DNA from: Macrostomum lignano
Taxonomy: Eukaryota
Assembly (NCBI GenBank): GCA_002269645.1
Contig: NIVC01000006.1
Location: 186,001 to 250,000 of the forward strand
Length of the DNA: 64,000 bases
Direction: 5' to 3'
Below the pieces are notes generated by a model. It had not been told where the DNA came from, ran no database searches, and saw only the letters and a program-made list of their open reading frames with translations. Within the stretch, counting starts at the first letter, position 1, and every line of letters starts with the position of its first letter. Position numbers and translations under genes: made by a program. Shown here piece by piece: positions 2 through 22,355 of this stretch.

Positions 2-3000
2 GACGCCGAGAATATTATTGGAAGGCTTGGCAGGCTGCAGTTTGGCTCTAGCGCCGGCCCCCAGAGCGCCTGGGAGCAGCAGAGTGAGCACGCAATCTCC
101 CAGCCAATCAACATGGGCGGCGGTAGCTCGCGTCTGCAGCAGCAACAGCAACAACAACAACAGCAGCATTCATTGGATAATAACATCACAACGGGTTCGA
201 TGCTGTCTCCTAGTAGCAAAGATCTTATTGCTGTCGGCTTGCGCATAGTCGATCAGGTGTTGGACAGCGGTTCGCCACCCGGCGGCGCCGGGGCTGCCGC
301 TTGCGCAGCATCGTCTAACAACAGCCTGCCAAAGAAGTCTTTAGATACGCCCGTTATCAGTCAGCATCATCAGATGGCCCAGCAGCCGCCGCCGCATCAT
401 CAGCAGCCTCCGCATTTCTCAATGATGCCGCATCATCAGCAGCAGGCTCCGCCAGTCGTGCATAGCAATGGTTACCAACAGCAGCAACAACAGCATCAAC
501 AATATCCTCCTATGCCGCCGCCTCCGCACGTGTCCATGTTTGACTACAATGACCCGAACGCCGCCGCTGCGGCTGCCTTCCTGCAGCAGCAGCAGCAGCT
601 GATTGGCGGTGCTGGAGCTGGACCCGACGGTAACGCCTTCATGGCTGCTTACAGTATTGAGCAGCAACAACAGCCGCATCAGCATAGGCAACTGTTCGAT
701 TCATCAGCCTATGCAGGATTTTATCAACAGCAGCCGGCGCCGCTTGAGGTAGCGTCTTCTTCTTACGAGCAGCAGCAGCAGGAAGATGCGTACCAACAGC
801 TCCAACAGATGGGGGGTTTTGAGCAGCTGCACTCCATGCAGCAGCAGCAGACCGCCAGAGTCCAGTCTCCCGCGCCGCATCTTCAGCACGGCCTTCAGCA
901 GCCGCCGCAGCTTTCTCACCACCAGCATCAGCAGCAGCATGGCAGCAGCTTGTTTGGCCCATTCGGAGCCCAGACTCCGCCTCTGACGCCGCCCCATCAT
1001 CAGGACCCGGCCATCGCTGCCTATTCCGGCCCGTTTGGCGCCGGTGGCCCCGCCGCGTCTGGCACCGGTAGCGGGATGAACATGCTGCCGCCGGCCGCCC
1101 AGTTTTATGGATTCCAGTATCCGCCAACTATGCTGATGCAGCAGCAACAGCAGGCTCAGCAGAACCGTCAGTCCACGCCTTTCAAAGCTCCGACGCCGGA
1201 CTTGGCGCTGTTCGGCGCCGCTTCGCCTCCACCGCACACGCCGCCAGCTATGGGGCCGGGCGCGCCCCCTTATCTTGCCATGGCTCGCCTTGATCAGCAG
1301 CACCATCAGGCTGGATTCTTTGCCCCGCCGCCGCCTCAGCATCATCACCACCAGCTTCAGCAGCATGGCCAGCAGCAGGGGCATCATTTCCAAAATCAGC
1401 AGCATCAGCAGCCAGCGCATCATCACCATCATCATATGCGCGGTCTGAGCGCTGTAGGCGTTGGCAGCGAGTCGGTCGGCAGGTCCCGCCTGCTCGAAGA
1501 CTTCAGGCAGAACCGCGTGCCAAGTCTCAGTCTGAAAGACCTGACTGGTCACGTGGTGGAGTTTGCTCAGGACCAGCACGGGTCCAGATTTATCCAGCAG
1601 AAATTAGAGACAGCCAATCCACCGGATAAGACGCAGGTGTTTACTGAGCTGCTCCAATCTGCTAACGCTCTGATGACTGACGTGTTTGGCAATTATGTTA
1701 TACAGAAATTCTTCGAATTCGGCACACCGGAGCAGAAGCAGATCCTGGCGCAGAGGGTTCGCGGCCAAGTGCTGTCTCTGGCGTTGCAGATGTACGGCTG
1801 CAGAGTGATTCAGAAAGCGCTGGAGTCTCTGCCTACTGAGCAGCAAGTAGAGATTGTTAGCGAGCTTCAGGTGAGAAGCTGCATAATTAGTTTATTAACT
1901 ACCTTTGTTTATTACTGCCGTCAGTCAGCTTAACTTACAACTCTTACAAAATTCCATCTTATAGGACAACGTGCTAAAGTGCGTCAAAGATCAGAATGGC
2001 AATCATGTCGTGCAAAAATGCATCGAGTGCGTTGATCCAGCGCATTTGAACTTCATTGTGGAAGCATTCAAAGGACAGGTTTGTGGAATTGGAACTTGTG
2101 CACCCTTGCCTCTGTGGTCTCACTCTTGTCTCTGCTGTCTCTGTGGTCTCACTCTTGTCTCTGCTGTCTCTGTGGTCTCACTCTTGTCTCTGCTGTCTCT
2201 GTGGCCTCACTCTTGTCTCTGCTGCCTCTGTGGTCTCACTCTTGTCTCTGCTGTCTCTGTGGTCTCACTCTTGTCTCTGCTGTCTCTGTGGTGTCACTCT
2301 TGTCTCTGCTGTCTCTGTGGTCTCATTATTGTCTCTGCTGTCTCTGTGGTCTCATTATTGTCTCTGCTGTCTCTGTGGTCTCACTCTTGTCTCTGCTGTC
2401 TCTGTGGTCTCATTATTGTCTCTGCTGTCTCTGTGGTCTCATTATTGTCTCTGCTGTCGCTGTGGTCTCATTATTGTCTCTGCTGTCTCTGTGGTCTCAT
2501 TATTGTCTCTGCTGTCGCTGTGGTCTCATTATTGTCTCTGCTGTCTCTGTGGTCTCATTATTGTCTCTGCTGTCTCTGTGGTCTCATTCTTGTCTCTGCT
2601 GTCTCTGGTCTCACACTTTGTCTCTGTGGCCTCACTCTTGTCTCTGCTGTCTCTGTGGCCTCACTCTTGTCTCTGCTGTCTCTGTGGCCTCACTCTTGTC
2701 TCTGCTGTCTCTGTGGCCTCACTCTTGTCTCTGCTGTCTCTGTGGTGTCACTCTTGTCTCTGCTGTCTCTGTCGTCTCACACTTTGTCTCTGTGGTCTCC
2801 TTGGTAACCAGCCTGCCAACTTCCCTCAGGTGGTCGCGCTCTCAACGCACCCCTATGGCTGCCGGGTGATCCAGCGCATTCTTGAGCACTGCACGCCTGC
2901 TCAGACTCAATCAGTGCTGGAGGAGCTGCACCAGAACACTGAACAGCTTGTGCAGGACCAGTATGGGAACTATGTTATTCAGGTATGGCAATGCCCTGTT

Positions 3001-5695: not shown

Positions 5696-6254
5696 AAAAA
5701 AGTGAGCACTGAGCCTCGCCCGGTCCCAATGTAGCTATGCATTCGTGTATTTGTCTAACTTGTTTCTTTATTTAAACTTACCCCGATATGACGCATTTTA
5801 TGACTGCGTCTAATGCTATAGAAATGTTTGTTTAAATCGCAGCTGTCGGCATGCTACTGCTCTGATCAGCATATCTGATGATTTTCTTGGCTTTTTTCAG
5901 AATTATCTTATCGACAATTTCAATTATGAATTATGATTATTATATATTGATTGTATCTTGCTCCACGCGATATTGTTTCCCATTGCGGCTTTATACCTTT
6001 ATATTTATCCTTCGCTTATAAAATTAAAGTACATGCAACCCCTACTCTGATTGTAGTCCCTGACCTGTGCGCTACCTGTCTAATCTGTCTATTCAGTTCT
6101 ACTATAATTAAATATATTATGCAACTAACATTAATTTTATGCACTAACAGGCTCATCGTTCATTTATGCGAACCAACCAAGAGCTGACAACTAACTGATG
6201 TGCTGTTTTTGCCTTCTCGAAGTAATGTTTGCATCAGCGTGGATTACCAGAGTT

Positions 6255-8275
6255 CACTGAATGATCCCGGTTCTCTGATACTGAGTGATCCCGATTCTCT
6301 GATACTGAGTGATCCCGGTTCTCTGATACTGAGTGATCCCGATTCTCTGATACTGAGTGATCCCGATTCTCTGATACTGAGTGATCCCGATTCTCTGATA
6401 CTGAATGATCCCGATTCTCTGAAACTGAATGATCCCGATTCTCTGATACTGAATGATCCCGATTCTCTGATACTGAATGATCCTGATTCTCTGATACTGA
6501 ATGATCCCGATTCTCTGATACTGAATGATCCCGATTCTCTGATACTGAATGATCCCGATTCTCTGATACTGAATGATCACGATTCTCTGATACTGAATGA
6601 TCCCGATTCTCTGATATTGAATGATCCCGATTCTCTGAAACTGAATGATCCCGATTCTCTGATACTGAATGATCCCGATTCTCTGATATTGAATGATCCC
6701 GATTCTCTGATACTGAATGATCCCGATTCTCTGATACTGAATGATCCCGATTCTCTGATACTGAATGATCCCGATTCTCTGATATTGAATGATCCCGATT
6801 CTCTGAAACTGAATGATCCCGATTCTCTGATACTGAATGATCCCGATTCTCTGATATTGAATGATCCCGTTTCTCTGATACTGAATGATCCCGATTCTCT
6901 GATACTGAATGATCCCGATTCTCTGATACTGAATGATCCCGATTCTCTGAAACTGAATGATCCCGATTCTCTGATACTGAATGATCCCGATTCTCTGATA
7001 TTGAATGATCCCGTTTCTCTGATACTGAATGATCCCGATTCTCTGATACTGAATGATCCCGATTCTCTGATACTGAATGATCCCGATTCTCTGAAACTGA
7101 ATGATCCCGATTCTCTGATATTGAATGATCCCGATTCTCTGATACTGAATGATCCCGATTCTCTGATACTGAATGATCCCGATTCTCTGATATTGAATGA
7201 TCCCGATTCTCTGATACTGAATGATCCCGATTCTCTGATACTGAATGATCCCGATTCTCTGATACTGAATGATCCCAATTCTCTGATATTGAATGATCCC
7301 GATTCTCTGATACTGAATGATCCCGATTCTCTGATATTGAATGATCCCGATTCTCTGATACTCTGAATGATCCCGATTCTCTGATTTTGAATGATCCCGA
7401 TTCTCTGATACTGAATGATCCCGATTCTCTGATACTCTGAATGATCCCGATTCTCTGATATTGAATGATCCCATTTCTCTGATACTGAATGATCCCGATT
7501 CTCTGATACTGAATGATCCCGATTCTCTGATATTGAATGATCCCGATTCTCTGAAACTGTGATCCTGATTCTCTGATACTGAATGATCCCATTTATCTGA
7601 TACTGAATGATCCCGATTCTCTGATACTGAATGATCCCGATTCTCTGATTTTGAATGATCCCGATTCTCTGATACTGAATGATCCCGATTCTCTGATACT
7701 CTGAATGATCCCGATTCTCTGATATTGAATGATCCCGATTCTCTGAAACTGTGATCCCGATTCTCTGATACTGAATGATCCCATTTCTCTGATACTGAAT
7801 GATCCCGATTCTCTGATACTGAATGATCCCGATTCTCTGATACTGAATGATCCCGATTCTCTGATACTGAATGATCCCGATTCTCTGATACTGAATGATC
7901 CCGATTCTCTGATACTGAATGATCCCATTTCTCTGATACTGAATGATCCCGATTCTCTGATACTGAATGATCCCGATTCTCTGAAACTGTGATCCCGATT
8001 CTCTGATACTGAATGATCCCGATTCTCTGATACTGAATGATCCCGATTCTCTGATACTGAATGATCCCGATTCTCTGATACTGAATAATCCCGAATCCCT
8101 GATACTGAATGATCCCGATTCTCTGATACTGAATGATCCCGATTCTCTGATACTGAATGATCCCGATTCTCTGATACTGAATGATCCCGATTCTCTGATA
8201 CTGAATGATCCCGATTCTCTGATACTGAATGATCCTGATTCTGATACTGAATGATCCCGATTCCGATACTGAATG
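6255..8275. repeat. 24-bp minisatellite (CTGAATGATCCCGATTCTCTGATA)n, about 2 kb
   Basis: About 84 units. It generates the spurious LNDPDSLI, SENRDHSV and QYQRIGII ORFs. Confidence 0.97.
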
Positions 8276-9334
8276 GTTTCAGTCAGATTCTCAAAAAGTA
8301 AGTCAAACAGCAGGATTTGTGTTAAACAAAAGTGTTGCTGATAAAGCATTACGCGCTTAAAAGCACCATTGATTGTCACGTGACACGCTGGCACATTAAA
8401 AATCAGAGTGACTGCTTCTGTATTTCGATATTTAGAAGTTGTTCCGGTAGTACGATTGTAAGTGAAAAATCATTCAATGGTGTTTGATTGTTTGCAAATT
8501 TACTAATGATGTGTGAACGACTGTACTACATTGTCTATTTGAACAAGTATTAAATACTCGTACATTCTTTTGGGCGTCATCAAAAACGCATGGACAATAA
8601 GTTTTGGTTTGTTGACAAAAAAGTACCGTACTGGTGAATGTGGGAAAGGGTTTTATGAATCCGATCGTTGAAATGTTTGATTAAAAGTGTTAATCATTCG
8701 GTTTTGTGAATAGCATTCAGACTGACGCATAAAGTAAGCCACTTTACTGAAGGAAATGGAGCATTTCCAATATCTATGCTAGGCCCGGGTATTTTATTAT
8801 TCACACGGTTTTCATAAGACCCCTGAAGTCTATAATATACGCTCCTAACTGCTCATATTTAAGGCTGATATTTAACACTGGTACTCGTAGTCCACAATAA
8901 CAGTAATGACCTGCTGGACAATGTAACACAGGGAAAAATTACCGGTAAAAACTGACTGCAACAAATCGTGCAAATTTTTGGGCCAATTTTTGCTGCAAAA
9001 TGCATTGACGAGATGGGGAATTCTCGGGTTTCTTTTTATAGTACTAAAAATTCCAATACTTGGACTTCCGTATTGCAACATGGCGTTTTCGTTTTTTCAA
9101 GCTGTTTTTGTTTATGTTTATGATTTGTGTGATTCGAATAACACTGCATCAGTTTTCAATAACTACGAGCGTAACTGCGTTTCCAATTACTTGGGCTTCA
9201 AGCAGGTCTTCATCTATTGCAATCAAAACGACAGTTAAGTACAACTAAAGATAGCATCGGGAGTTCTCTCTCTCTCTCTCTCTCTGACTTGTCCAGCAGC
9301 AAAACAAGCGACATTCGATCATCTGCTATTTCTT

Positions 9335-13236: not shown

Positions 13237-16200
13237 ATGCTACTCGTGAATGTGCCGGCTTCATCTGCTAGTAAAATGACTTCTATTGTCAAGCCATCGT
13301 CATCTGCTTTAACTTCAGCAGGCACCGAGGACTGCTCAAACAACAACGCTATGCAGACTAAATCCTCTCCGCCAGACGAAGATGACTTCGACGACACGAA
13401 ATCGTCAAAGAGAAGGCGCAGAAGAAAGAAGCTGAAAGACGACTTTGAGCTGCCGGTGAGTGAGCTGCAGGGTTTTACCATGCGCCAGCCTATACCTAGG
13501 TGCAAAAGAGTCTGATCTTGTGACAGATCCTCTAGCACAGCTGCTGTGTTTTCGTTACCATTTTTTGCTCAGGGATGAAAGTGTCAGAACTTTTTGCACA
13601 CCCCTCGTACAATATGTAATTAAAACATCGTACGTAACTACTAAGTAAGTAGCTTTCTTAAGGGGGGCCGTAGCCCAGCGGTCTAGCGCAGGCTCTGGTG
13701 TGCCAGCGACCCAGGCTCGATTCCAAGTGCAGTCACATTAATTTGGGGCTGAATTGGAATCTCGGCTTGGCTCTGCCTTGCAATTAACGGCCTTGAGAGC
13801 CAGCCCCCCAAGGCGCAGTGAAGTGTACATGCCTAACGATAAAAATAAAGTCAGGGCCGCTGTACACTCCTGTGTGAGTGTGTGCCTGCGTACGTATCCG
13901 CGCGCTTGTATGCCTGCTCAGGGGAGTCGGCGGAATGGGCAGTAATGCCTCTCGCCGGTTGTGTGCCTATGTCGCTTAAAGTGCGCCAGGGTGCACACAA
14001 CCCCCCTGCCTCTAATAAAAAAATAATAAAGTAGCTTTCTTGACAGTTTTGTACAACCTATATTACTCAATTGGCTTAATCAGGCTTAATGGCTTAATCA
14101 GGAGACTTGAAAGATTACTTTCGCCTCCAAGCAATACTCAAGCCAGACTCCCAGTATTGACGCTTCTTTAAGTTGGAGGCACCATTTTTAAGATAACATC
14201 TCCGAGCACAGGCTACCGCTACAGCATTGTGAGTTTGCGGGAGGGCTTCAGGCACTTTTAGGCTTTAGACAGCGAGGAGACAAGCAGTGGTGCCCATTCC
14301 TAAGATGCGGCAGTGCACAGAATCAAACCGGGGATCGCGGTGCGAGGGTGCGACGCGTTGCGATTAAATCCGGGGACGCAACATCAACTCCACCGCCACA
14401 GTTTGATGATATATAAAAACATCAAACTTTACAGGAGAGCCTGCCCAACGTGTTCGAGTTCAGCACCAGCCTCTACCGGTTCACGGAACACCTGGCTGAG
14501 TTCACCAAACTCTACCAGGAGGTGTTCCCGCAGCTGATGGCCGATAAGAACAAATATTTCATCAGCACCGAGCAGCAGGGAGTCGGCTGTCTGGACCTGC
14601 TATTTGAGACATTCTGCAAGCACCTCGGCATGGAGAAACTAAAAAATTTGCCCAACGGCAGCGGCGAGCGAGTGTTCTGCTGGCTGGGCAAGCGCAAGGC
14701 CAGTGAGATCCTGCCAACTCTGCGGCCGAACCACCACATCGTCAACCGCCTGCCGATGGACGTATTCCTCAAAGACAAGCAGAGCCTGGCGTTCACCCTG
14801 CAGTCCAGCATTTTCCAACGGGGCATCGGTTACCCGGAGCACGACTGTCGGCACAACGGCGGGCGCCGGCTGCGCCATCAGCTGCTGTGCCCGCACCAGT
14901 ACGCTGAGCACAGCTTCCAGCACTGCCAAGTCCCGGGATGCTTCGAGGCCCTTCGGCTGGAGGCGCGCGCTGAGCGTCAGCTTATCGACCTGCACAACGG
15001 CGACTTGTGCCCGTGCTTCCGGGCGAACTACTTCGTGCCCGAGACTCGCGTTTTCGCCTCCTCGGTGCAGCAGAACGTCTTCATCGAGGAGGTCAGCAGG
15101 CTCGCCCCCGACTCGCAGTGGATCGTCAAGCCGTCCTACCTGCGCCGGGGTCGAGGCGTCCGAGTTCTGCCCTCAGTCAAGCATCTCAAATCCTTTCTAA
15201 AAGTGGAAACCCGACAGCGGTTCATGTGGGGCCAGGACTATGTGGTGCAGCGGTACATCAAGAACCCCATGTTGACCAATGCCGGGCAGAAGTTCGACGT
15301 GCGAATGTTCCTCCTGGTGGTTGTGTGCCGCTTCTGGCGCGTTCTCGGCTTCCTGCACCCCGGCTACGTCCGCAAGGTAGCCCGGCCGTACAAGGAGATG
15401 CGCCAGGACGACCGCTTCGACCCTAGGGAGCATCTGGCCAACACGCGCATCTGGCGACGCGCTAACGCGGTCGTCAGCACCCCCAACGCACCCGCCGCTA
15501 GCGGGGCCTCATCGCAGCGGTTGAAAGGATCTTCCAGTTCCATCAGCTCCGCCGTCGCCGCTGTTGCCGCCCCCCTGCCGGAGTCCCTGAACTCCGTCAA
15601 CGATATGGACGATGTGACGTCAGTCATGAATATCGCCGACTCCGGTGTCACCTTCAACCGACTGTCAGCGCAGCAAGCCAGCCTGTCAACAGAGCAAGTA
15701 CCTGCGTCGCTGTGGACCCAGAGTGGCTTCTCAGAGTGGCAGCAGCAGCAGCAGCAACAACGACAGCAGCAGGCAATGACGCTGACCTGCCCAAGACAGC
15801 AGCAGCTGAATCAACAGCTCCCGTGCGCTCAGCAGAGCCAGCCCTTTCAATTCCAGCAGCTTCTGCAGCAGCGGCAGAACAGCGCCAGGTCTCGATTAAA
15901 AACGCCAAAAAAAACTTCTAAATCACCGGAACCGTTCGAGCCTGTCCCGCTGACCGGCTTCTTCCGACAGTCATTCGAGTCCGACGAGTGCGAGGAGTTC
16001 AACTACGCTGTGCGTCACGGCTGCCTGAAGGGCAACAGAGCCAACCTGCCGCTGCTGCTCGGCACCATGCGCATTCCTGGAGCCAGGCACTTGGCCGCGT
16101 CACTTCCAACAGCGAAAATGTCTGCCAAGCAGCAAAACTGGAGCAGCGCCAAGCCGCAGAGTAAAAGCAAGCCAACAGCGGGAAATAAGCAAGGCAAGCG

Positions 16201-17077
16201 GAAGCAATCTAGTGTCCGGATGCGTGCCACCGAGACCAGGGAGCTGCTGGAGCCGTTCATTATGAATAAATACTTCATCCGCCGCCTTCAGCAGATGGCT
16301 ACTCGAATCTGCGAGGGCGTGTTCGATCAAGTCAAGGAGAAGTCGAACTGCTACCAGCTGTTCTCGTTGGACATCTGCATCGACTCGTTCGGCGATCCCT
16401 GGCTGCTGGAGGTGAATCCCACCATCATTACCGAGGATGTCAACTGGAACAGCGGCACCATACGCCAGGTGGTCCCGGCGGTGTTCAGCGAGAGCTTGGG
16501 TCTCGCACACGAGTGCACCCGAAAGTCGCTCAATTTCTTGGCCCTTCGAACGCCCAGTAGTTACCAGCGCAAGCCCAACGACTTGGTGTTTCGGCAAAAC
16601 TTCCTGTGGATGTACAACACCCCGGCGAAGAGCTGCGAGATGTCCGAGCTGAAGAGTCTGAAGTACGGAGTGGACAGCATGCACAAGCAGCAGCTGGCGA
16701 GTCGAGGCATCGAGTACGTGCCCGTGGACTATTATCCTAAACGAAACCTGCGTCGAATCAGCAAGAAGGAGTCCCGGCAGCTCAACGACCAGAAGAAACA
16801 GCCAAAATCAATCGCGGCCGCGTCCGCTGCTAGCCGGTGCATCTACCGTTTCCCCTCGCCCGTGCGCTCCGTACCTGTGCTGGAGGAGGACCTGGCGCAC
16901 AGCACCCGATACATGCGACTTCAACCAGACATTGTTGGCCGCCAGCTGATGGTTCGCCAAATTGAGGCCGAGGCCAGGGCCAGGCGGAAGGAAACCATGG
17001 CTCGGCGATGTGCCACACACCAGGACAGCCTGGCGAAGCGATCGGTCACGGTTAGGCACAGAGTGCAGGCGGACTAA
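13237..17077 (+). CDS. TTLL10: Tubulin-tyrosine-ligase-like (TTLL10-like, glycylase-family) protein; probable exons 13237-13455, possibly 14193-14228, and 14435-17077
   Basis: ATP-grasp motifs FVPETR, WIVKPS..RGRGV, VVQRYIKNP, KFDVRMFLL, HLAN and FSLDICID...WLLEVN. RRLQQM and QVVPAVFSESLGLAHECTRKS align with TTLL10 as I recall it. The ORF-track start at 14450 is GTG; acceptor TTTACAG at 14434 and donor CCG|GTGAGT at 13455 are both phase 0. The 5' exons and subfamily call are less certain than the TTL domain. Confidence 0.85.
13662..14028 (+). mobile_element. tRNA-derived SINE family 1, full length (about 370 bp), with target-site duplication
   Basis: A box TAGCCCAGCGG 13671-13681, B box GGCTCGATTCC 13714-13724, A-rich tail, and TSD AAGTAGCTTTCTT at 13647-13659 and 14029-14041. 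It lies in the first predicted TTLL intron. Confidence 0.92.
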
Positions 17078-17375: not shown

Positions 17376-20300
17376 CTAATGCGTGTATCGAACGCTTCCG
17401 TCGGCCTCGAACTTCACCTTTCTTAGAAACAGTCGCCTACGATTTCTAAACTTGGCGGCCTGCAGCCACAGGAATTTGAGATACGGCCTGCATACGGCGA
17501 AGCTGTCCCAATGGCTCCAAGAGTTCGGGCAGCCGCCTCCGCGGTTTGTCATTGAATTCGCCGTCTCGGCACTTCGACGCGTCTTCCATCGGAGGCATCT
17601 GGCGCGGCAGGGCATGCAGTTGCTGCGATTGGAGATCCGCAATTTGGCGTAGAGGATGCTCAAGCCGCTGAATGGCGACGGCAGGGTGGGCAGGACGGAG
17701 TACTCGCACAGCATCCGAATTCGGTGCTTGTTCCAGATGACAAAGGTTTGCTCAGCCTTGGTGTTAACTGTCAGGCTGAACTTGGCAATCAGCAGGTTGA
17801 GCAGAGCCAAGTTCACGAACAGGTAGATGTGTATGAATAGGGCCAGGTAGAGTCGAAGTCCGTCCCGATGCGGACAGAGGCAGTCGCTTCCGGCCAGGTC
17901 GGAGCAGTTGCTCGACTCGGAGCGCCTTTCGCACGGGCGTAGCGAGTCGATTTGGAACTCGCCGAAAGCCACGAGCATCGGGCGCGAGTAGATTTCCACC
18001 AGGGATTCGATAGAGCCCATCTTCACGGCTCCATTGTCGGAGACTCGATAGAGCCGTCCACCCGGGCTCAGCACCGATTGGAAGAAGACTCCGAAAGCCA
18101 CCGTGACCAGCACGAAGATGGACAGAAACGGCAGCAGGTCGTCAACAATCAGCGTCTTAAGGATGCTGACGGTCGGTCCGGTACGCCGGAACACGGTGAG
18201 GTTGTACAGCCAGCGGATGCTGAGCAGCACGTACGATGCAGCCAGGACGAGGCGCAGGTAGTACTCGTACTCGGCCGAGCCGCTGCCGCCTGGGTCAATA
18301 GCGCCAAAAACCGCTAAGCCGGTGAGGCTGACGAGCTGGAGAATCGCCGGCAGGAGCAGCTCGGTGCCGCGCCAGACCCCGGACAGATCCGGCCACCAGT
18401 GCTCGGTGCGACTGCGATGGCGATGGGGGGGAGAATGTTGTAAAGTGAGTTTCGAAACGTCTAAGCATTGCATCTGCGGATAAAGAGAATGGGGCAGGGC
18501 AGCTCGGTGGCTAAACCTGTCAAAAGGCCCCTCCTCTCCCTGCAAACTAGTTAAATAACCACCAAATCGCACGATTGATATATAAATGGGCGAAAAATAT
18601 GTACAAGCGGTCTGATCACGCACAAAATGTTACTATGACTAGATTAATGCAAACGCCTGCAGTAAAATTGAAAACATGAGTCATTCTACCATTTTTAGAC
18701 CGATTCTAATACCCTTAGATGTTCATTGATTATTGATTGACACTGATTAAGATATCCTAGAATGATTTCGAGTACTAGGTTGCGAGCCTAGTGAGTGGGT
18801 TTGTAGCCTAGTGGTTAAAGCGTCGGACTTGCGAACAAAAAAGTCGAGGGTTCGAGTCTCAACCAACTCGGAGCAATTTGTGTCCTTTAGCAAGACGCTT
18901 AACTTTGCACTGCTTCAGTTCGCCCAGCTTTTAAATGGGTGCCAGCATTAGCTGGGGTATTTGAGGGTGTGTGGCGACCCCCCCCCAGTCTATCTCGCCG
19001 CGCAATAGCTGTGGCTGAGCTGTCGGTTGCACATCAGCCCATTAGGGCAGGTGTAATCATTACCATTTATTATATGACGAGCCCGCAACCGCAAGTGATA
19101 CTAAAACTTGTATCCAGACTCGCTGTCTGGAAATGGGAGTTCGTGCGTTCAAGACACCTAGACTCGTTTCTTCTCTCTCTCTCTCTCTCTCTTCGCATTC
19201 TTTAGTGTGCTACTAAGGCGAACTCTTCGAATCATTGAGCACATTTCAATAGCTCACCGAATAATAACGCAGCCAAGAACGAGGTGGTCAACTACAAAGA
19301 CTAACAGCAGGCTGATTGCAGTTGGCTGTTGCCAATTTGAGGCGCTGTCGCCGTCGCCATCCATTAGGAGAAACACGGTGAACAAGACTGTAAACACCGC
19401 TAGCGATGCCGCGTGCAGAATGAACCGACTGGACGGTGAGAATCCCCTTCTTCCGGCACTGCAGCAGTTGGATCGGCCGCACGAGTGACAGAGCGGACCG
19501 GAGTTCGCTACCCATCGACGCTTCACCAGCATGCGGATGCAGCGGGTGGACAGGGCCTCGTCGCATCCGGCTGCCAGCAGCAGCTGCAGGATGGTGTAGC
19601 GCTGGCCTGCACTGCAAGCGTGTTTTTAGAGTTCAAGGGTTAACGAACTCGGTAAGAACTTCAGTTTTTAATAATTAGTACTAAACTCGCAATGTTTCTT
19701 CGTCCAAACAACAGATACTGGAATAACTAGATGGGCCACTCAGCACATTTGCGTGTAAGCTACTCTCAGTTCAGTAGTAAGTTAAACAGAAGCATTTTAA
19801 TGTATTTTTAAAGCCAAGACTCAATTTATTGGCTCTTAACCGGCCCCAGGCTTAAACCCTCCAACAGCTTAGCTCACATCACCTTTCTATGTTCTCGACG
19901 CTCGAACGACCCTCGCGTAGCACCGGCAGCTCGATGGCCGAAAATGTCGGCCCTTCTCCGTTGATCTCGCCGTGCACGTACGCGTCAATGCGTTGACGTT
20001 CCTGAGAGGCAAAGTAGAATTTTAACCAACTTTGATAGATAGGTTATTGTGCTTTTTACCTTCTTTAATACTCCGGCTCACTTTCTCAGAAGTGGCTCCA
20101 TCGTGCAGGCTGTTCAACGCGTTGACCAGCACGCTCTCCGCGCTCTGACGCATGTCGGCCACGCACCGGTGCCGCACCTGCCTCATCCGGGTGCACATTA
20201 GCAGCACGCGCAGGCAGCTGGGCACCAGATCGAACGGCCGCGCCAGCAGCATCTCCTCGACGATCCGACTGCGACCAAGCGACACCGCCAGGTCAAGTGG

Positions 20301-22355
20301 GTCCAAGCAGTCGGCGCCGTTAAGGTGCTCCGGCCGCAGCTGGGCGAGTCCTTTCCCGATGTAGGGCAGCGCCGATGTGCCGCCGTCCGTGGCCAGATAG
20401 CCGAGCAGGTCGCAGCAGAATCCGCTACTCCATGCTCCGTCCAGGTGGCCAAGCTCCAGCAGGCTGACGAAAGCCTCTGGACTGTCCTCGCCGATGGCGG
20501 CAACCAGGAGGCGCAGTGGCAGCGGGTACTGCCGTCTCTCGCGGCCTCCCGTCTGCCAGTAGCGCTGCCCGGACTCGTAGCTGGCAGCTTTGTCAGTGTC
20601 ATCACGACCGTCGTCGTCAGCTTGACGGAACAGGCGGCCGCTGTCGTGCTCGTCGCTGGCGGCGCACAACGGCCCGAGGAGGCGGCGCGCCCGAGCCCGG
20701 CTGGCGTCGTCCGGTCGCGGTCGAGGCGAGCCAAGGACGGGGTCCAACAGCAGCAGCGTTTGACGCCAGATGCTCGGCTCGGCTCCAGAGCAGCGCTGGC
20801 GAAGTCCAACCAGTTGACGTCGACGAGCGAGGATGTCGACGGCGGATTCGCCTCGGTTAGTGCGCTCGCCAGTCAGGCGGAGGCCGGTGAGCAGCCAGGC
20901 GAGGCGGCCGAACTCGCAGGCGAAGTGGAGGCACGAGTAGCCAGCGTGCGGTCCAGTGGTCACCCGCTCTGCGCAGAACTCCGCCCAGCGCTGCGGGCCC
21001 AAGCAGCGCAGTAGAAGACTCGCCGCCGCGCGCGAGCTCGTTGAATCGTCGTGATGAGCGTAGAACACGTGCGCCAGGTTAAAGCCGTCGCGATTGCGGC
21101 AGCCCCGTGGCGTGGAGGTCGCCGCTGCTGCCGAATCGGGTGCCGTCGACGAGTCGCGCAGCAGATGCGGCAGCAGAGTCCAGTGCCCCGTGGCGACGCA
21201 CTTCATCAACGGAGTGTATCCGCCGCTGTTCACCTGGTCCAGACTGAGACTTGGGTCAATGCGGAGCATGTCGTGCATCAGTTGGACGATGTCTATCGCA
21301 CTGGCTTGATGGTTGTGGGACAAGCTTGGCTGCTGAGAACCGTTAGGAATGGAGGCGAACCTGCAAGCAAATCGGTTTTTATTTGATGAAATATGCATCG
21401 AAGGATTTAACAATGACGTACTAATCAAGGACGGTGGCTGGTAAGAGGTCGAAATGGGGTGAGTTACTGAAAATACGTTCGCTGTTACTCGTAGAATCGT
21501 AGACTTCAAGAAATAAGTTGGAAAGATTTGGGTGCATGATTCATGGTTGCTATGGTCTTTATTTAATTCGTAGAGGAGGTTTTGAAGTACTGCCGCAAAT
21601 CAGGCGGGCACACAGCCCTCACACGGGGTGTACAGCGGTTGTGTGAAATGCACAGCAACCTTTATCATGTCAAGTCACGTGCATGATCATTAAATGAATT
21701 TGAACGAAAGTCATTGCATCCGGCTTGCTTACCCCTCCGACGGGCGTCTCCCGTGACTATTCAGGCACGCATCCGCAGGCGAAAGCACACCGGCGCTTCT
21801 CGCAGCCAGTGCGTGCAACGCCGAATTGCCGGCAGCGTCGAGGCGGCCGGGCCGGGCGGAGCCAAGGTCCAGCAGTAGGCGCGCCGATTTCAGATGCTTT
21901 CGCTGGCAGGCCGCGTGCAGAGCGGTGCAGCCGGAGCGGTTGGCCCGTTCGGGGTTCACGACGGACCTTGTTTGAGTATAATTGAGGTTGCACGCATTAG
22001 ACTCTAAGATTCGGTTTCAATAACATATTGAAATATCTTATTTACTCTAGCTCGATTTGCTTTCGCACCTGTCCAGCCGCAGCAGCAGCTCCAGAACTTC
22101 CGTGTGTCCGCAAGCCGCCGCCTCGGTCAGCGCCGTGTCGCCGTCATTGTCAGGCAGCTCGGCGGGGCAGCCGGCGGCCAGCAGGCAGGCCAGCAGCTCC
22201 GGCCGGCCCCAGTGGGCGGCCACCTGGGCGAGGCCGCAGCCACCGGAGATGCGAGCGTCCGGACAGGCGGCCGGCTCGGCCAGAAGGCGGCGCAGCAGCC
22301 GTAGGTTGCCGTCGGCGATGGCCGCCTCGGCCTGACGCGACCAGCTGGTTGACAT
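17376..22355 (-). CDS. Ankyrin-repeat TRPM-like cation channel, about 1137 aa; exons 22355-22069, 21966-21733, 21360-20082, 20001-19883, 19611-19258, about 18516-17376
   Basis: Exons 1-3 carry ANK repeats (GDTALTEAAACGHTEVLELLL, GCTALHAACQRKHLKSARLLL, GYTPLMKCVATGHWTLL, GYSCLHFACEFGRLAWLL). Exons 5-6 carry pre-S1 (TILQLLLAAGCDEALSTRCIRMLVKRRW), S1-S2, S4-S5 (TGPTVSIL..DDLLPFL..FGVFFQSVLSP), pore (RPMLVAFGE), S6 (NLALLNLLIAKF) and TRP helix (IWNKHR..EY..LPSPF). All five GT-AG introns are phase compatible (2,2,0,2,2). The last acceptor is the least certain. Confidence 0.85.
18797..19075 (+). mobile_element. tRNA-derived SINE family 2 with a CORE-like central domain
   Basis: A box TAGCCTAGTGG 18804-18814, B box GGTTCGAGTCT 18849-18859, then GTGTCCTTTAGCAAGACGCTTAAC...CCCAGCTTTTAAATGGG. 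Related copies at 35122 and 43550. Confidence 0.8.

Follow-up and report, generated by a model that had tools for sequence, protein, structure and literature searches.

The 64,000-nucleotide stretch of the Macrostomum lignano genome analysed here (contig NIVC01000006.1 of assembly GCA_002269645.1, positions 186,001 to 250,000, referred to below as the window) carries a channel gene of the TRP superfamily on its minus strand, from position 22355 to position 17376, in which N-terminal ankyrin (ANK) repeats precede a TRPM-like channel core. Three-frame translation and splice joining resolved the locus into coding blocks alternating with AT-rich spacers, giving six exons with every intron bounded by GT-AG. 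The joined open reading frame (ORF) comprises 3309 nt, that is, 1102 codons plus the stop, without an internal stop codon. The limits of the coding sequence, an ATG at 22355 and a stop ending at 17376, are those given by an initial annotation made from the letters of the sequence alone. Its six compatible exons encoding one protein were recovered, while its estimate of about 1137 aa has to be corrected to 1102 aa. The exons have a GC content of 0.58-0.74 against 0.34-0.46 for the introns, and the GC content at third codon positions (GC3) is 0.77, as expected of genuine coding exons. In the list below, MHR denotes a melastatin homology region, S1 to S6 are the transmembrane (TM) helices, and P0001 is a public protein model described thereafter.

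22069..22355, minus strand: exon 1 (residues 1-96, phase-2 donor), starting with the ATG at 22355 and encoding an N-terminal cap and ANK repeats 1-2
21733..21966, minus strand: exon 2 (residues 96-174), ANK repeats 3-4, with junctions identical in P0001
20082..21360, minus strand: exon 3 (residues 174-600), degenerate ANK-like repeats, linker, MHR3-like segment and first part of the MHR4-like region
19883..20001, minus strand: exon 4 (residues 601-640), a loop within the MHR4-like region, forming a low-confidence insert
19258..19611, minus strand: exon 5 (residues 640-758), end of the MHR4-like region (RYTILQLLLAAGCD), pre-S1, S1 and S2
17376..18411, minus strand: exon 6 (residues 758-1102 plus stop), S3-S6, pore, TRP helix and C-terminal tail

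The sole close database match is P0001, a UniRef entry from M. lignano of 754 aa named "ANK_REP_REGION domain-containing protein", which is identical to model residues 5-758. All four junctions of exons 1-5 are thereby reproduced, and the ANK exons are already tied to S1-S2 in the public record. Among the shared junctions are the exon 1 donor (CTGGACAG followed by gtgcga) and the phase-0 exon 3 donor (GAGAAA followed by gtgagc). An alternative exon 3 donor, GTAAAA, situated 8 nt downstream, was rejected because the frame into exon 4 would be lost and P0001 uses GTGAGC. The junction of exons 5 and 6 lies outside the public annotation; it is in frame, is collinear without indels with the closest paralogue, P0002, and falls between S2 and S3, both of which are predicted by AlphaFold2 (AF2) as continuous helices. 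No in-frame ATG was found upstream of 22355 within the open stretch, and neither further ANK exons upstream nor another channel paralogue elsewhere in the 64-kb window was detected. P0001 itself begins at Trp5, right after the AG in ATGTCAACCAG followed by CTGG (window positions 22341-22355, minus strand). This AG could be an alternative or trans-splice acceptor, so that the mRNA may have a 5' end other than the one implied by the ATG chosen here.

The proposition that two neighbouring genes, one with the ANK exons and one with the channel exons, have been mistakenly merged into one model draws on the exon 5/6 join, the only one without outside annotation, and on intron 5, the longest of the introns (846 bp), which contains repeat-like sequence. 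It is nevertheless extremely improbable. Even without exon 6, the ANK exons are continuous in P0001 with the MHR3/4-like region, pre-S1, S1 and S2; S2 (exon 5) and S3 (exon 6) would be nonfunctional if apart; and the junction in dispute is in frame and collinear with P0002. The same architecture recurs in dozens of relatives and in the schistosome channel Sm.TRPM_MCLZ, whose sequence was checked against complementary DNA (cDNA) (PMC10788528). The placement of ANK and channel exons in a single gene by the initial annotation is upheld by P0001, by the layout of the relatives and by the cDNA-checked schistosome gene. Read from its sequence, the locus is a real protein-coding flatworm gene described by a single-frame model.

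The domains of the predicted protein are as follows, clade I being the gene's own clade and clade II the second clade of ANK-bearing relatives in the tree presented further below.

21804..22322, minus strand: canonical ankyrin repeats (residues 12-150, spanning intron 1; Pfam Ank_2 4e-18, Ank 1.7e-15, and others)
20787..21299, minus strand: degenerate ANK-like repeats (residues ~195-365), present as AF2 helix pairs
20532..20786, minus strand: linker (residues 366-450), mostly disordered, with the clade-I motif L.DP..R.L.LPD (alignment consensus)
20325..20531, minus strand: MHR3-like segment (residues ~451-519), including AAIGEDSPEAFVSLLELG (20448-20501)
19446..20324, minus strand: MHR4-like region and pre-S1 (residues 520-695, spanning introns 3 and 4), including PLDLAVSLGRSRIVEEML (20247-20300)
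18192..19436, minus strand: S1-S4 voltage-sensor-like domain (VSLD; residues 699-831, spanning intron 5)
17775..18182, minus strand: pore domain, made up of the S4-S5 linker, S5, pore helix, Cys-rich turret and S6
17625..17774, minus strand: TRP helix (VIWNKHRIRMLCEY) and post-TRP segment (residues 971-1020), the latter with LPSPF plus a helix
17379..17624, minus strand: C-terminal tail (residues 1021-1102), with the family motif FL..QA..(F/L)R..R and AF2 helices at 1024-1047 and 1066-1079

By sequence search among PDB structures, the N-terminus of the model matches ankyrins and DARPins. The degenerate repeats that follow the canonical ones appear in the AF2 model as helix pairs (residues 224-245, 269-294, 317-332 and 347-364), with a weak single-repeat match at residues 221-241; homology to clade-I relatives, in their distal ANK region, was seen by tblastn, and to clade II by hhalign. 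The array totals about four canonical and about four degenerate repeats, or ~8 ANK-type helix pairs up to residue ~365; the "8-9 ankyrin repeats" counted by eye in the initial annotation therefore stand as a composite of Pfam-supported repeats and repeats predicted by AF2. Within the linker, residues 409-450 have a predicted local distance difference test score (pLDDT) below 50, as have residues 624-641 in the exon 4 loop. No LSDAT_euk or LSDAT_prok match was returned by Pfam at E<=1, and a SLOG profile constructed locally from five canonical TRPM proteins found 38 other proteins and not this one; among the ANK-bearing relatives, it matched P0149 only. The ANK array and linker occupy specifically the place of SLOG/MHR1-2, and the proposed replacement of MHR1/2 by ankyrin repeats is thus confirmed by Pfam and by the local SLOG profile. 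Likewise, Pfam found no Nudix/NUDT9H or kinase domain in the model, in agreement with the absence of either tail noted at the outset. A C-terminal coiled coil (TRPM_tetra) gave no Pfam match, the post-TRP tail amounting to ~80 residues with two short predicted helices.

To judge from its sequence, the channel core is TRPM-like. The best 60 matches of the channel part to the PDB were all TRPM2, TRPM5, TRPM4, TRPM8, TRPM1, TRPM3 or TRPM7, with E-values from 2e-13 (TRPM2) to 0.04, and TRPA, TRPC, TRPN and TRPV were not represented among these 60. In a PDB sequence search with the whole model, residues 694-1016 matched TRPM2, and the TRP helix region VIWNKHRIRMLCEYSVLPTLPSPF aligns with the same protein; Pfam Ion_trans gave a weak match at residues 814-978. 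The filter motif AFGEF is encoded at 17955-17969 and the S6 motif NLLIAKF at 17778-17798. In columns anchored on canonical TRPM, the FGE of the pore, the Asn and Ile of S6, and the Trp and Glu of the TRP helix are kept. The full-length AF2 model, built from a 30-row alignment (pLDDT 70.4, predicted template modelling score 0.61), continues after the ANK repeats into a disordered linker and a helical stretch (450-690), beyond which come the six TM helices together with a pore helix and a long S6-TRP helix, with exon 5 contributing helices 699-723 and 736-759. PDB matches, AF2 and conserved motifs together bear out the S1-S6 helices, Cys-containing pore loop and TRPM-style TRP helix of the initial annotation.

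When the whole AF2 model was submitted to Foldseek, NOMPC was returned first, followed by TRPM4, TRPM2, TRPM5, TRPM8 and TRPM3 with ~685 aligned columns, and nearly all of the listed matches besides NOMPC were TRPM. The gene might on this basis be taken for a member of an ankyrin-type TRP family (TRPN, TRPA or TRPC) with a superficial likeness to TRPM, given that Drosophila NOMPC is the best fold match, that Drosophila TRPA1 ranks 13th, and that an ANK-plus-channel layout is common to these families. Such an assignment is very improbable, however, because non-TRPM structures all score E > 0.04 against 2e-13 for TRPM2, with none in the best 60, and because the sequence match to NOMPC is confined to the ANK part. 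Furthermore, the hhalign match to TRPM reaches E=1e-62 with MHR4 included, and the TRPM-specific PF25508 is carried by relatives. The NOMPC fold match is a full-length alignment over ANK and TM parts with a TM-score of 0.31; it was rejected as a sign of TRPN membership, the sequence evidence being exclusively TRPM. As in TRPN/NOMPC and TRPA1, an ankyrin solenoid at the N-terminus leads into a TRP channel of six TM helices, but the protein has ~8 repeats rather than the 29 of NOMPC or the 14-17 of TRPA1, its TM domain and TRP helix are TRPM-like, and a TRPM-type MHR3/4 precedes the channel.

Like canonical TRPM (TRPM2/4/5/8), the predicted protein possesses an MHR4-like region, pre-S1, S1-S6, an FG(E/Q) filter, a Cys-containing turret, S6 NLLIA(M/K)F and a W...EY TRP helix followed by LPSPF, which resembles LPPPF. 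Unlike canonical TRPM, it has ankyrin repeats in place of SLOG/MHR1-2, a match to MHR3 that is transitive only, non-conserved Ca2+-site residues, and no detected coiled coil, NUDT9H or kinase. The channel core is presumably also similar to that of TRPS (soromelastatin, ced-11-like), the sister family of TRPM, which differs by published description in having SLOG, often Nudix, and no detected ankyrin (PMC7306681).

The two halves of the MHR3/4-like region are linked to TRPM by different routes. Aligned by hhalign with canonical SLOG-bearing TRPM, the ANK family gave E=1.1e-62 over model residues 520-1022, a span which covers PLDLAVSLGRSRIVEEML, and on this alignment MHR4 is retained. Residues 377-519 gave no direct hhalign alignment to canonical TRPM. 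For MHR3, clade I aligned with clade II at E=7e-61 over 785 columns, the ANK region included, and clade II in turn aligned with canonical TRPM at E=6e-77, starting at the beginning of MHR3. At the level of individual segments, the chain runs from canonical "EEVLQTALVNNKPGFVAQFLENGVN" through "SNIVRYVLFREDSVMLERIMNCGLI" of the relative P0034 to "LRLLVAAIGEDSPEAFVSLLELGHL" of the model; P0034 has the architecture ANK + PF25508 + Ion_trans and is matched by PF25508 at 45.8 bits (cut-off 27). In addition, an AF2 model of fragment 366-700 (pLDDT 66.6) was compared with the PDB, whereupon TRPM accounted for 47/50 listed matches, including the top 37, with 230-295 columns aligned at weak E-values of 0.08-0.7. 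Of the two MHR3/4 matches proposed by eye in the initial annotation, PLDLAVSLGRSRIVEEML (MHR4) is accordingly supported by direct hhalign alignment, and AAIGEDSPEAFVSLLELG (MHR3) transitively, via clade II only.

The family to which the gene belongs was exposed by an exhaustive HMMER search of residues 438-1102 against 1.84 billion representatives, which yielded 296 matches at E<=0.001; word-indexed searches, whether started from the C-terminal part or from a profile of 14 family sequences, recovered little besides the self-match P0001. The nearest full-length relatives combine N-terminal ANK with the channel and never carry SLOG, and the more distant ones are canonical TRPM with SLOG, PF25508 (MHR3/4) and Ion_trans. 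The same ANK-plus-channel layout, for which a search of flatworm and other spiralian proteomes had been advocated together with the initial annotation, is shared by dozens of ANK-bearing flatworm proteins. All organism-named ANK-type matches are from flatworms, several of them automatically named "TRPM7". They include trematodes (Opisthorchis, Dicrocoelium, Fasciolopsis, Paragonimus, Echinostoma and the schistosomatid Heterobilharzia), cestodes (Schistocephalus, Mesocestoides and Hymenolepis) and many M. lignano paralogues.

A neighbour-joining (NJ) tree was computed from the MHR4-to-TRP region of 95 sequences (400 columns, 200 bootstraps); it is unrooted and comprises TRPM-like matches only, with no outgroups. 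Its SLOG-free side holds 32 of the 33 ANK-bearing proteins, all but P0149, with 58% bootstrap. Clade I (99% bootstrap) unites this gene with the bulk of the Macrostomum expansion; every member with an organism name comes from Macrostomum, and a further one, without a name, is located on a metagenome contig. Seven Macrostomum lineages fall in clade II together with all of the parasite sequences, including the schistosomatid P0196. At 50% identity, the M. lignano proteins P0002-P0060 form roughly 25 clade-I and seven clade-II clusters, many of which comprise two to three near-identical copies (g1/g2/g3).

Two entries among the matches are of separate interest. The unusual P0149, annotated as "TRPM2" of Clonorchis sinensis (1708 aa), is the sole match with both ANK (92-182) and SLOG (293-522), and could be either a gene-model fusion or a true intermediate architecture. 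P0009 / P0163 is a clade-I ANK + TRPM-like protein of 1537 aa on a 5.1-kb contig in a metagenome-assembled genome labelled "Kangiellaceae bacterium"; its tree position beside Macrostomum P0008 suggests a bacterial bin contaminated with eukaryotic, flatworm-like sequence, and not a TRP channel of bacterial origin.

As to its origin, the ANK array would have replaced SLOG secondarily within Platyhelminthes, after which the family expanded greatly in Macrostomum. This course is the more parsimonious since SLOG-bearing TRPM predates animals and the named ANK-type members are all flatworm. The opposite polarity, whereby the ANK lineage would be an early-branching sister of TRPM and TRPS in which an ancestral ankyrin array persisted and SLOG never appeared, is unlikely, though it is not without arguments of its own. 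MHR3/4 themselves hold degenerate ANK repeats (Burroughs 2015, referred to in PMC13143021); ANK arrays occur in all the remaining group-1 TRP families; midpoint rooting puts clade I outside all other sequences; and the TRPM_MCLZ group was placed beside, not within, the other flatworm TRPMs (PMC12861061). With named members all from Platyhelminthes, however, losses would be needed in every other animal lineage, and SLOG-TRPM is already found in choanoflagellates (bioRxiv 10.64898/2026.06.15.732245). Moreover, with an E-value of 6e-77 and a match across all of MHR3/4, clade II lies much nearer to canonical TRPM than would be expected of a pre-SLOG stem, and the midpoint root is probably a long-branch effect. 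A broader conjecture would have clade I constitute an unrecognised subfamily of about two dozen lineages in free-living macrostomids with a diversified sensor domain, the conserved Ca2+-site residues being replaced in the present copy, and in its boldest version would make the ANK-type lineage the ancient sister of TRPM and TRPS with an ancestral ankyrin array; this is unlikely.

An ankyrin-bearing TRPM without SLOG is not in itself new. Sm.TRPM_MCLZ (Smp_333650) of schistosomes was reported to have a long N-terminal domain with multiple ankyrin-like repeats, in work in which the cDNA was checked and electrophysiology recorded (PMC10788528), and it is the only schistosome TRPM paralogue without MHR1/2 or SLOG (PMC11731825). 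Its group was subsequently termed "TRPM-like" on account of the N-terminal ankyrin repeat domains and clusters beside the other flatworm TRPMs (PMC12861061). The channel is the target of the antischistosomal drug meclonazepam, and its channel activity has been described (PMC10788528, PMC11731825, PMC12861061). The novelty which the initial annotation attached to the architecture is therefore lost, the same layout having already been published for TRPM_MCLZ in these three papers. Macrostomum and free-living flatworms are unmentioned for this group in two of them (PMC10788528, PMC12861061), and no description of the Macrostomum expansion of the ANK-type family was found in the literature searched.

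The predicted protein and TRPM_MCLZ are both flatworm proteins with ANK or ANK-like repeats, without SLOG, NUDT9H or kinase, and with a TRPM-like VSLD, pore and TRP helix. Clade II, with its trematode and cestode members, is homologous to the clade of this gene over ~785 columns, ANK included. The differences lie in the placement of the gene in the separate and very divergent clade I, with ~20% identity to clade II; in PF25508, which is not directly detectable here; in the S2 Glu and S3 Asn, which are lost here and kept in clade II; and in the exon count, six here against three reported for Sm.TRPM_MCLZ.

The S2 and S3 residues belong to the VSLD, which is strongly diverged in this paralogue, and were tallied over the 95 sequences of the tree alignment, in columns anchored on canonical TRPM. 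The S2 Glu is present in 83 of the 95 and the S3 Asn in 88, and clade II keeps both. In the model, the residue at the S2 position is not acidic, and S3 has Arg instead of Asn, WRGTE (18360-18374) replacing WNxxD, together with a 3-residue insertion. In TRPM2/4/5/8 these positions coordinate the activating Ca2+ ion.

Such changes invite the reading that the gene is a decaying, silent or non-conducting paralogue within the Macrostomum expansion, with its frame still intact and its sensor degenerating. Besides the S2 and S3 substitutions at widely conserved positions and the insertion in S3, the long branch of the gene, the absence of a database protein for exon 6 and the fragmentary nature of the only public model point in that direction. 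Against it stand a six-exon ORF of 3.3 kb without stop or frameshift, whose splice sites are all canonical, a GC3 of 0.77 and a strong GC contrast between exons and introns. The FGE of the pore, the Asn and Ile of S6 and the Trp and Glu of the TRP helix are also kept, and AF2 folds the transmembrane domain at good confidence. Decay is hence unlikely, albeit deserving of some weight, and a functional but sensor-diverged paralogue is the most likely interpretation of this copy.

Taken together, the gene is very probably a divergent new member of the flatworm ankyrin-bearing, SLOG-less "TRPM-like" group typified by TRPM_MCLZ. Several observations weigh against this assignment. The union of clades I and II, with an NJ bootstrap of 58%, is tentative. 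The identification of clade II with the TRPM_MCLZ group is inferred from taxonomy, from architecture and from TRPM_MCLZ being the only SLOG-less schistosome paralogue (PMC11731825). Neither Pfam PF25508 nor the local canonical MHR3/4 profile matched the model directly, and the retention of MHR3 is supported indirectly, by the transitive alignment and by fold-search E-values of at least 0.08. For exon 6, no covering protein was present in a 15-billion-sequence collection or in the 1.84 billion representatives, and no matching NCBI M. lignano protein turned up in these searches; an exact-sequence look-up of P0001 likewise found no record. Finally, the altered VSLD residues could signal a loss of function.

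By family analogy, the protein would be one subunit of a tetrameric non-selective cation channel. Gating would probably proceed as in TRPM, through coupling between the VSLD, the S4-S5 linker and the TRP helix, to go by TRPM_MCLZ and the TRPM structures, and the cations conducted would probably include Ca2+, as with Sm.TRPM_MCLZ. Because SLOG and NUDT9H are both absent, gating by ADP-ribose or nucleotides through either domain would not be expected. Activation by Ca2+ via the canonical TRPM2/4/5/8 site is probably absent as well, since this copy lacks the S2 Glu and has Arg for the S3 Asn, at positions conserved in nearly all relatives. The ANK array would most likely serve cytoplasmic assembly, scaffolding or the binding of a partner; the TRPA/TRPN-like sensing through the array, as envisaged by the initial annotation, is speculation.

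What is modestly new here is the Macrostomum expansion and the altered VSLD site, the architecture itself being already known. M. lignano is a tractable free-living laboratory model with many copies of a drug-target family for which schistosomes have one gene (PMC11731825). True Platyhelminthes are absent from the sampling of both broad phylogenies of TRPM and TRPS, in which the melastatin region is taken to be universal, and the text of each is silent on Platyhelminthes and Macrostomum (PMC7306681, PMC13143021). The first, which stated the TRPM/TRPS ancestor to be ankyrin-free, refers to acoel "flatworms" only (PMC7306681); the second, which stated all four MHRs for every TRPM and TRPS member, lists no flatworms in its species table (PMC13143021). 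SLOG was reported in the TRPMs of choanoflagellates (bioRxiv 10.64898/2026.06.15.732245). The addition of ANK-type sequences would alter claims such as the presence of MHR1-4 in all TRPM and TRPS members, and would permit a test of whether the array arose by swap or by ancestral retention. A divergent copy with an altered VSLD site is, in addition, a natural variant that could inform the gating of these channels.

Elsewhere in the window, an 875-aa ORF on the plus strand (14450-17077) carries a tubulin-tyrosine ligase family domain (PF03133, 5.6e-24). It runs towards the 3' end of the channel gene, the two stop codons lying ~300 bp apart. A further ORF of 606 aa (113-1933, plus strand) contains Pumilio-family RNA-binding repeats (PF00806, 2.3e-36). 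Neither neighbour has an evident functional link to the channel. An AT-rich block at window positions 6200-8400 holds long overlapping ORFs of 388-605 aa on both strands, the 605-aa ORF having no Pfam match, and may be repeat or transposon-derived. Within intron 5 of the channel gene, a tRNA-like stretch at 18790-18880 (plus strand) displays A-box-like and B-box-like motifs (GCCTAGTGGTTAAAGCGTCGGACTTGCGAAC and GAGGGTTCGAGTCTC) and is adjoined by a (CT)n microsatellite at ~19170-19195. It is probably a decayed tRNA-derived short interspersed nuclear element; ARAGORN and Rfam returned no match, and the stretch has a single occurrence in the 64-kb window.

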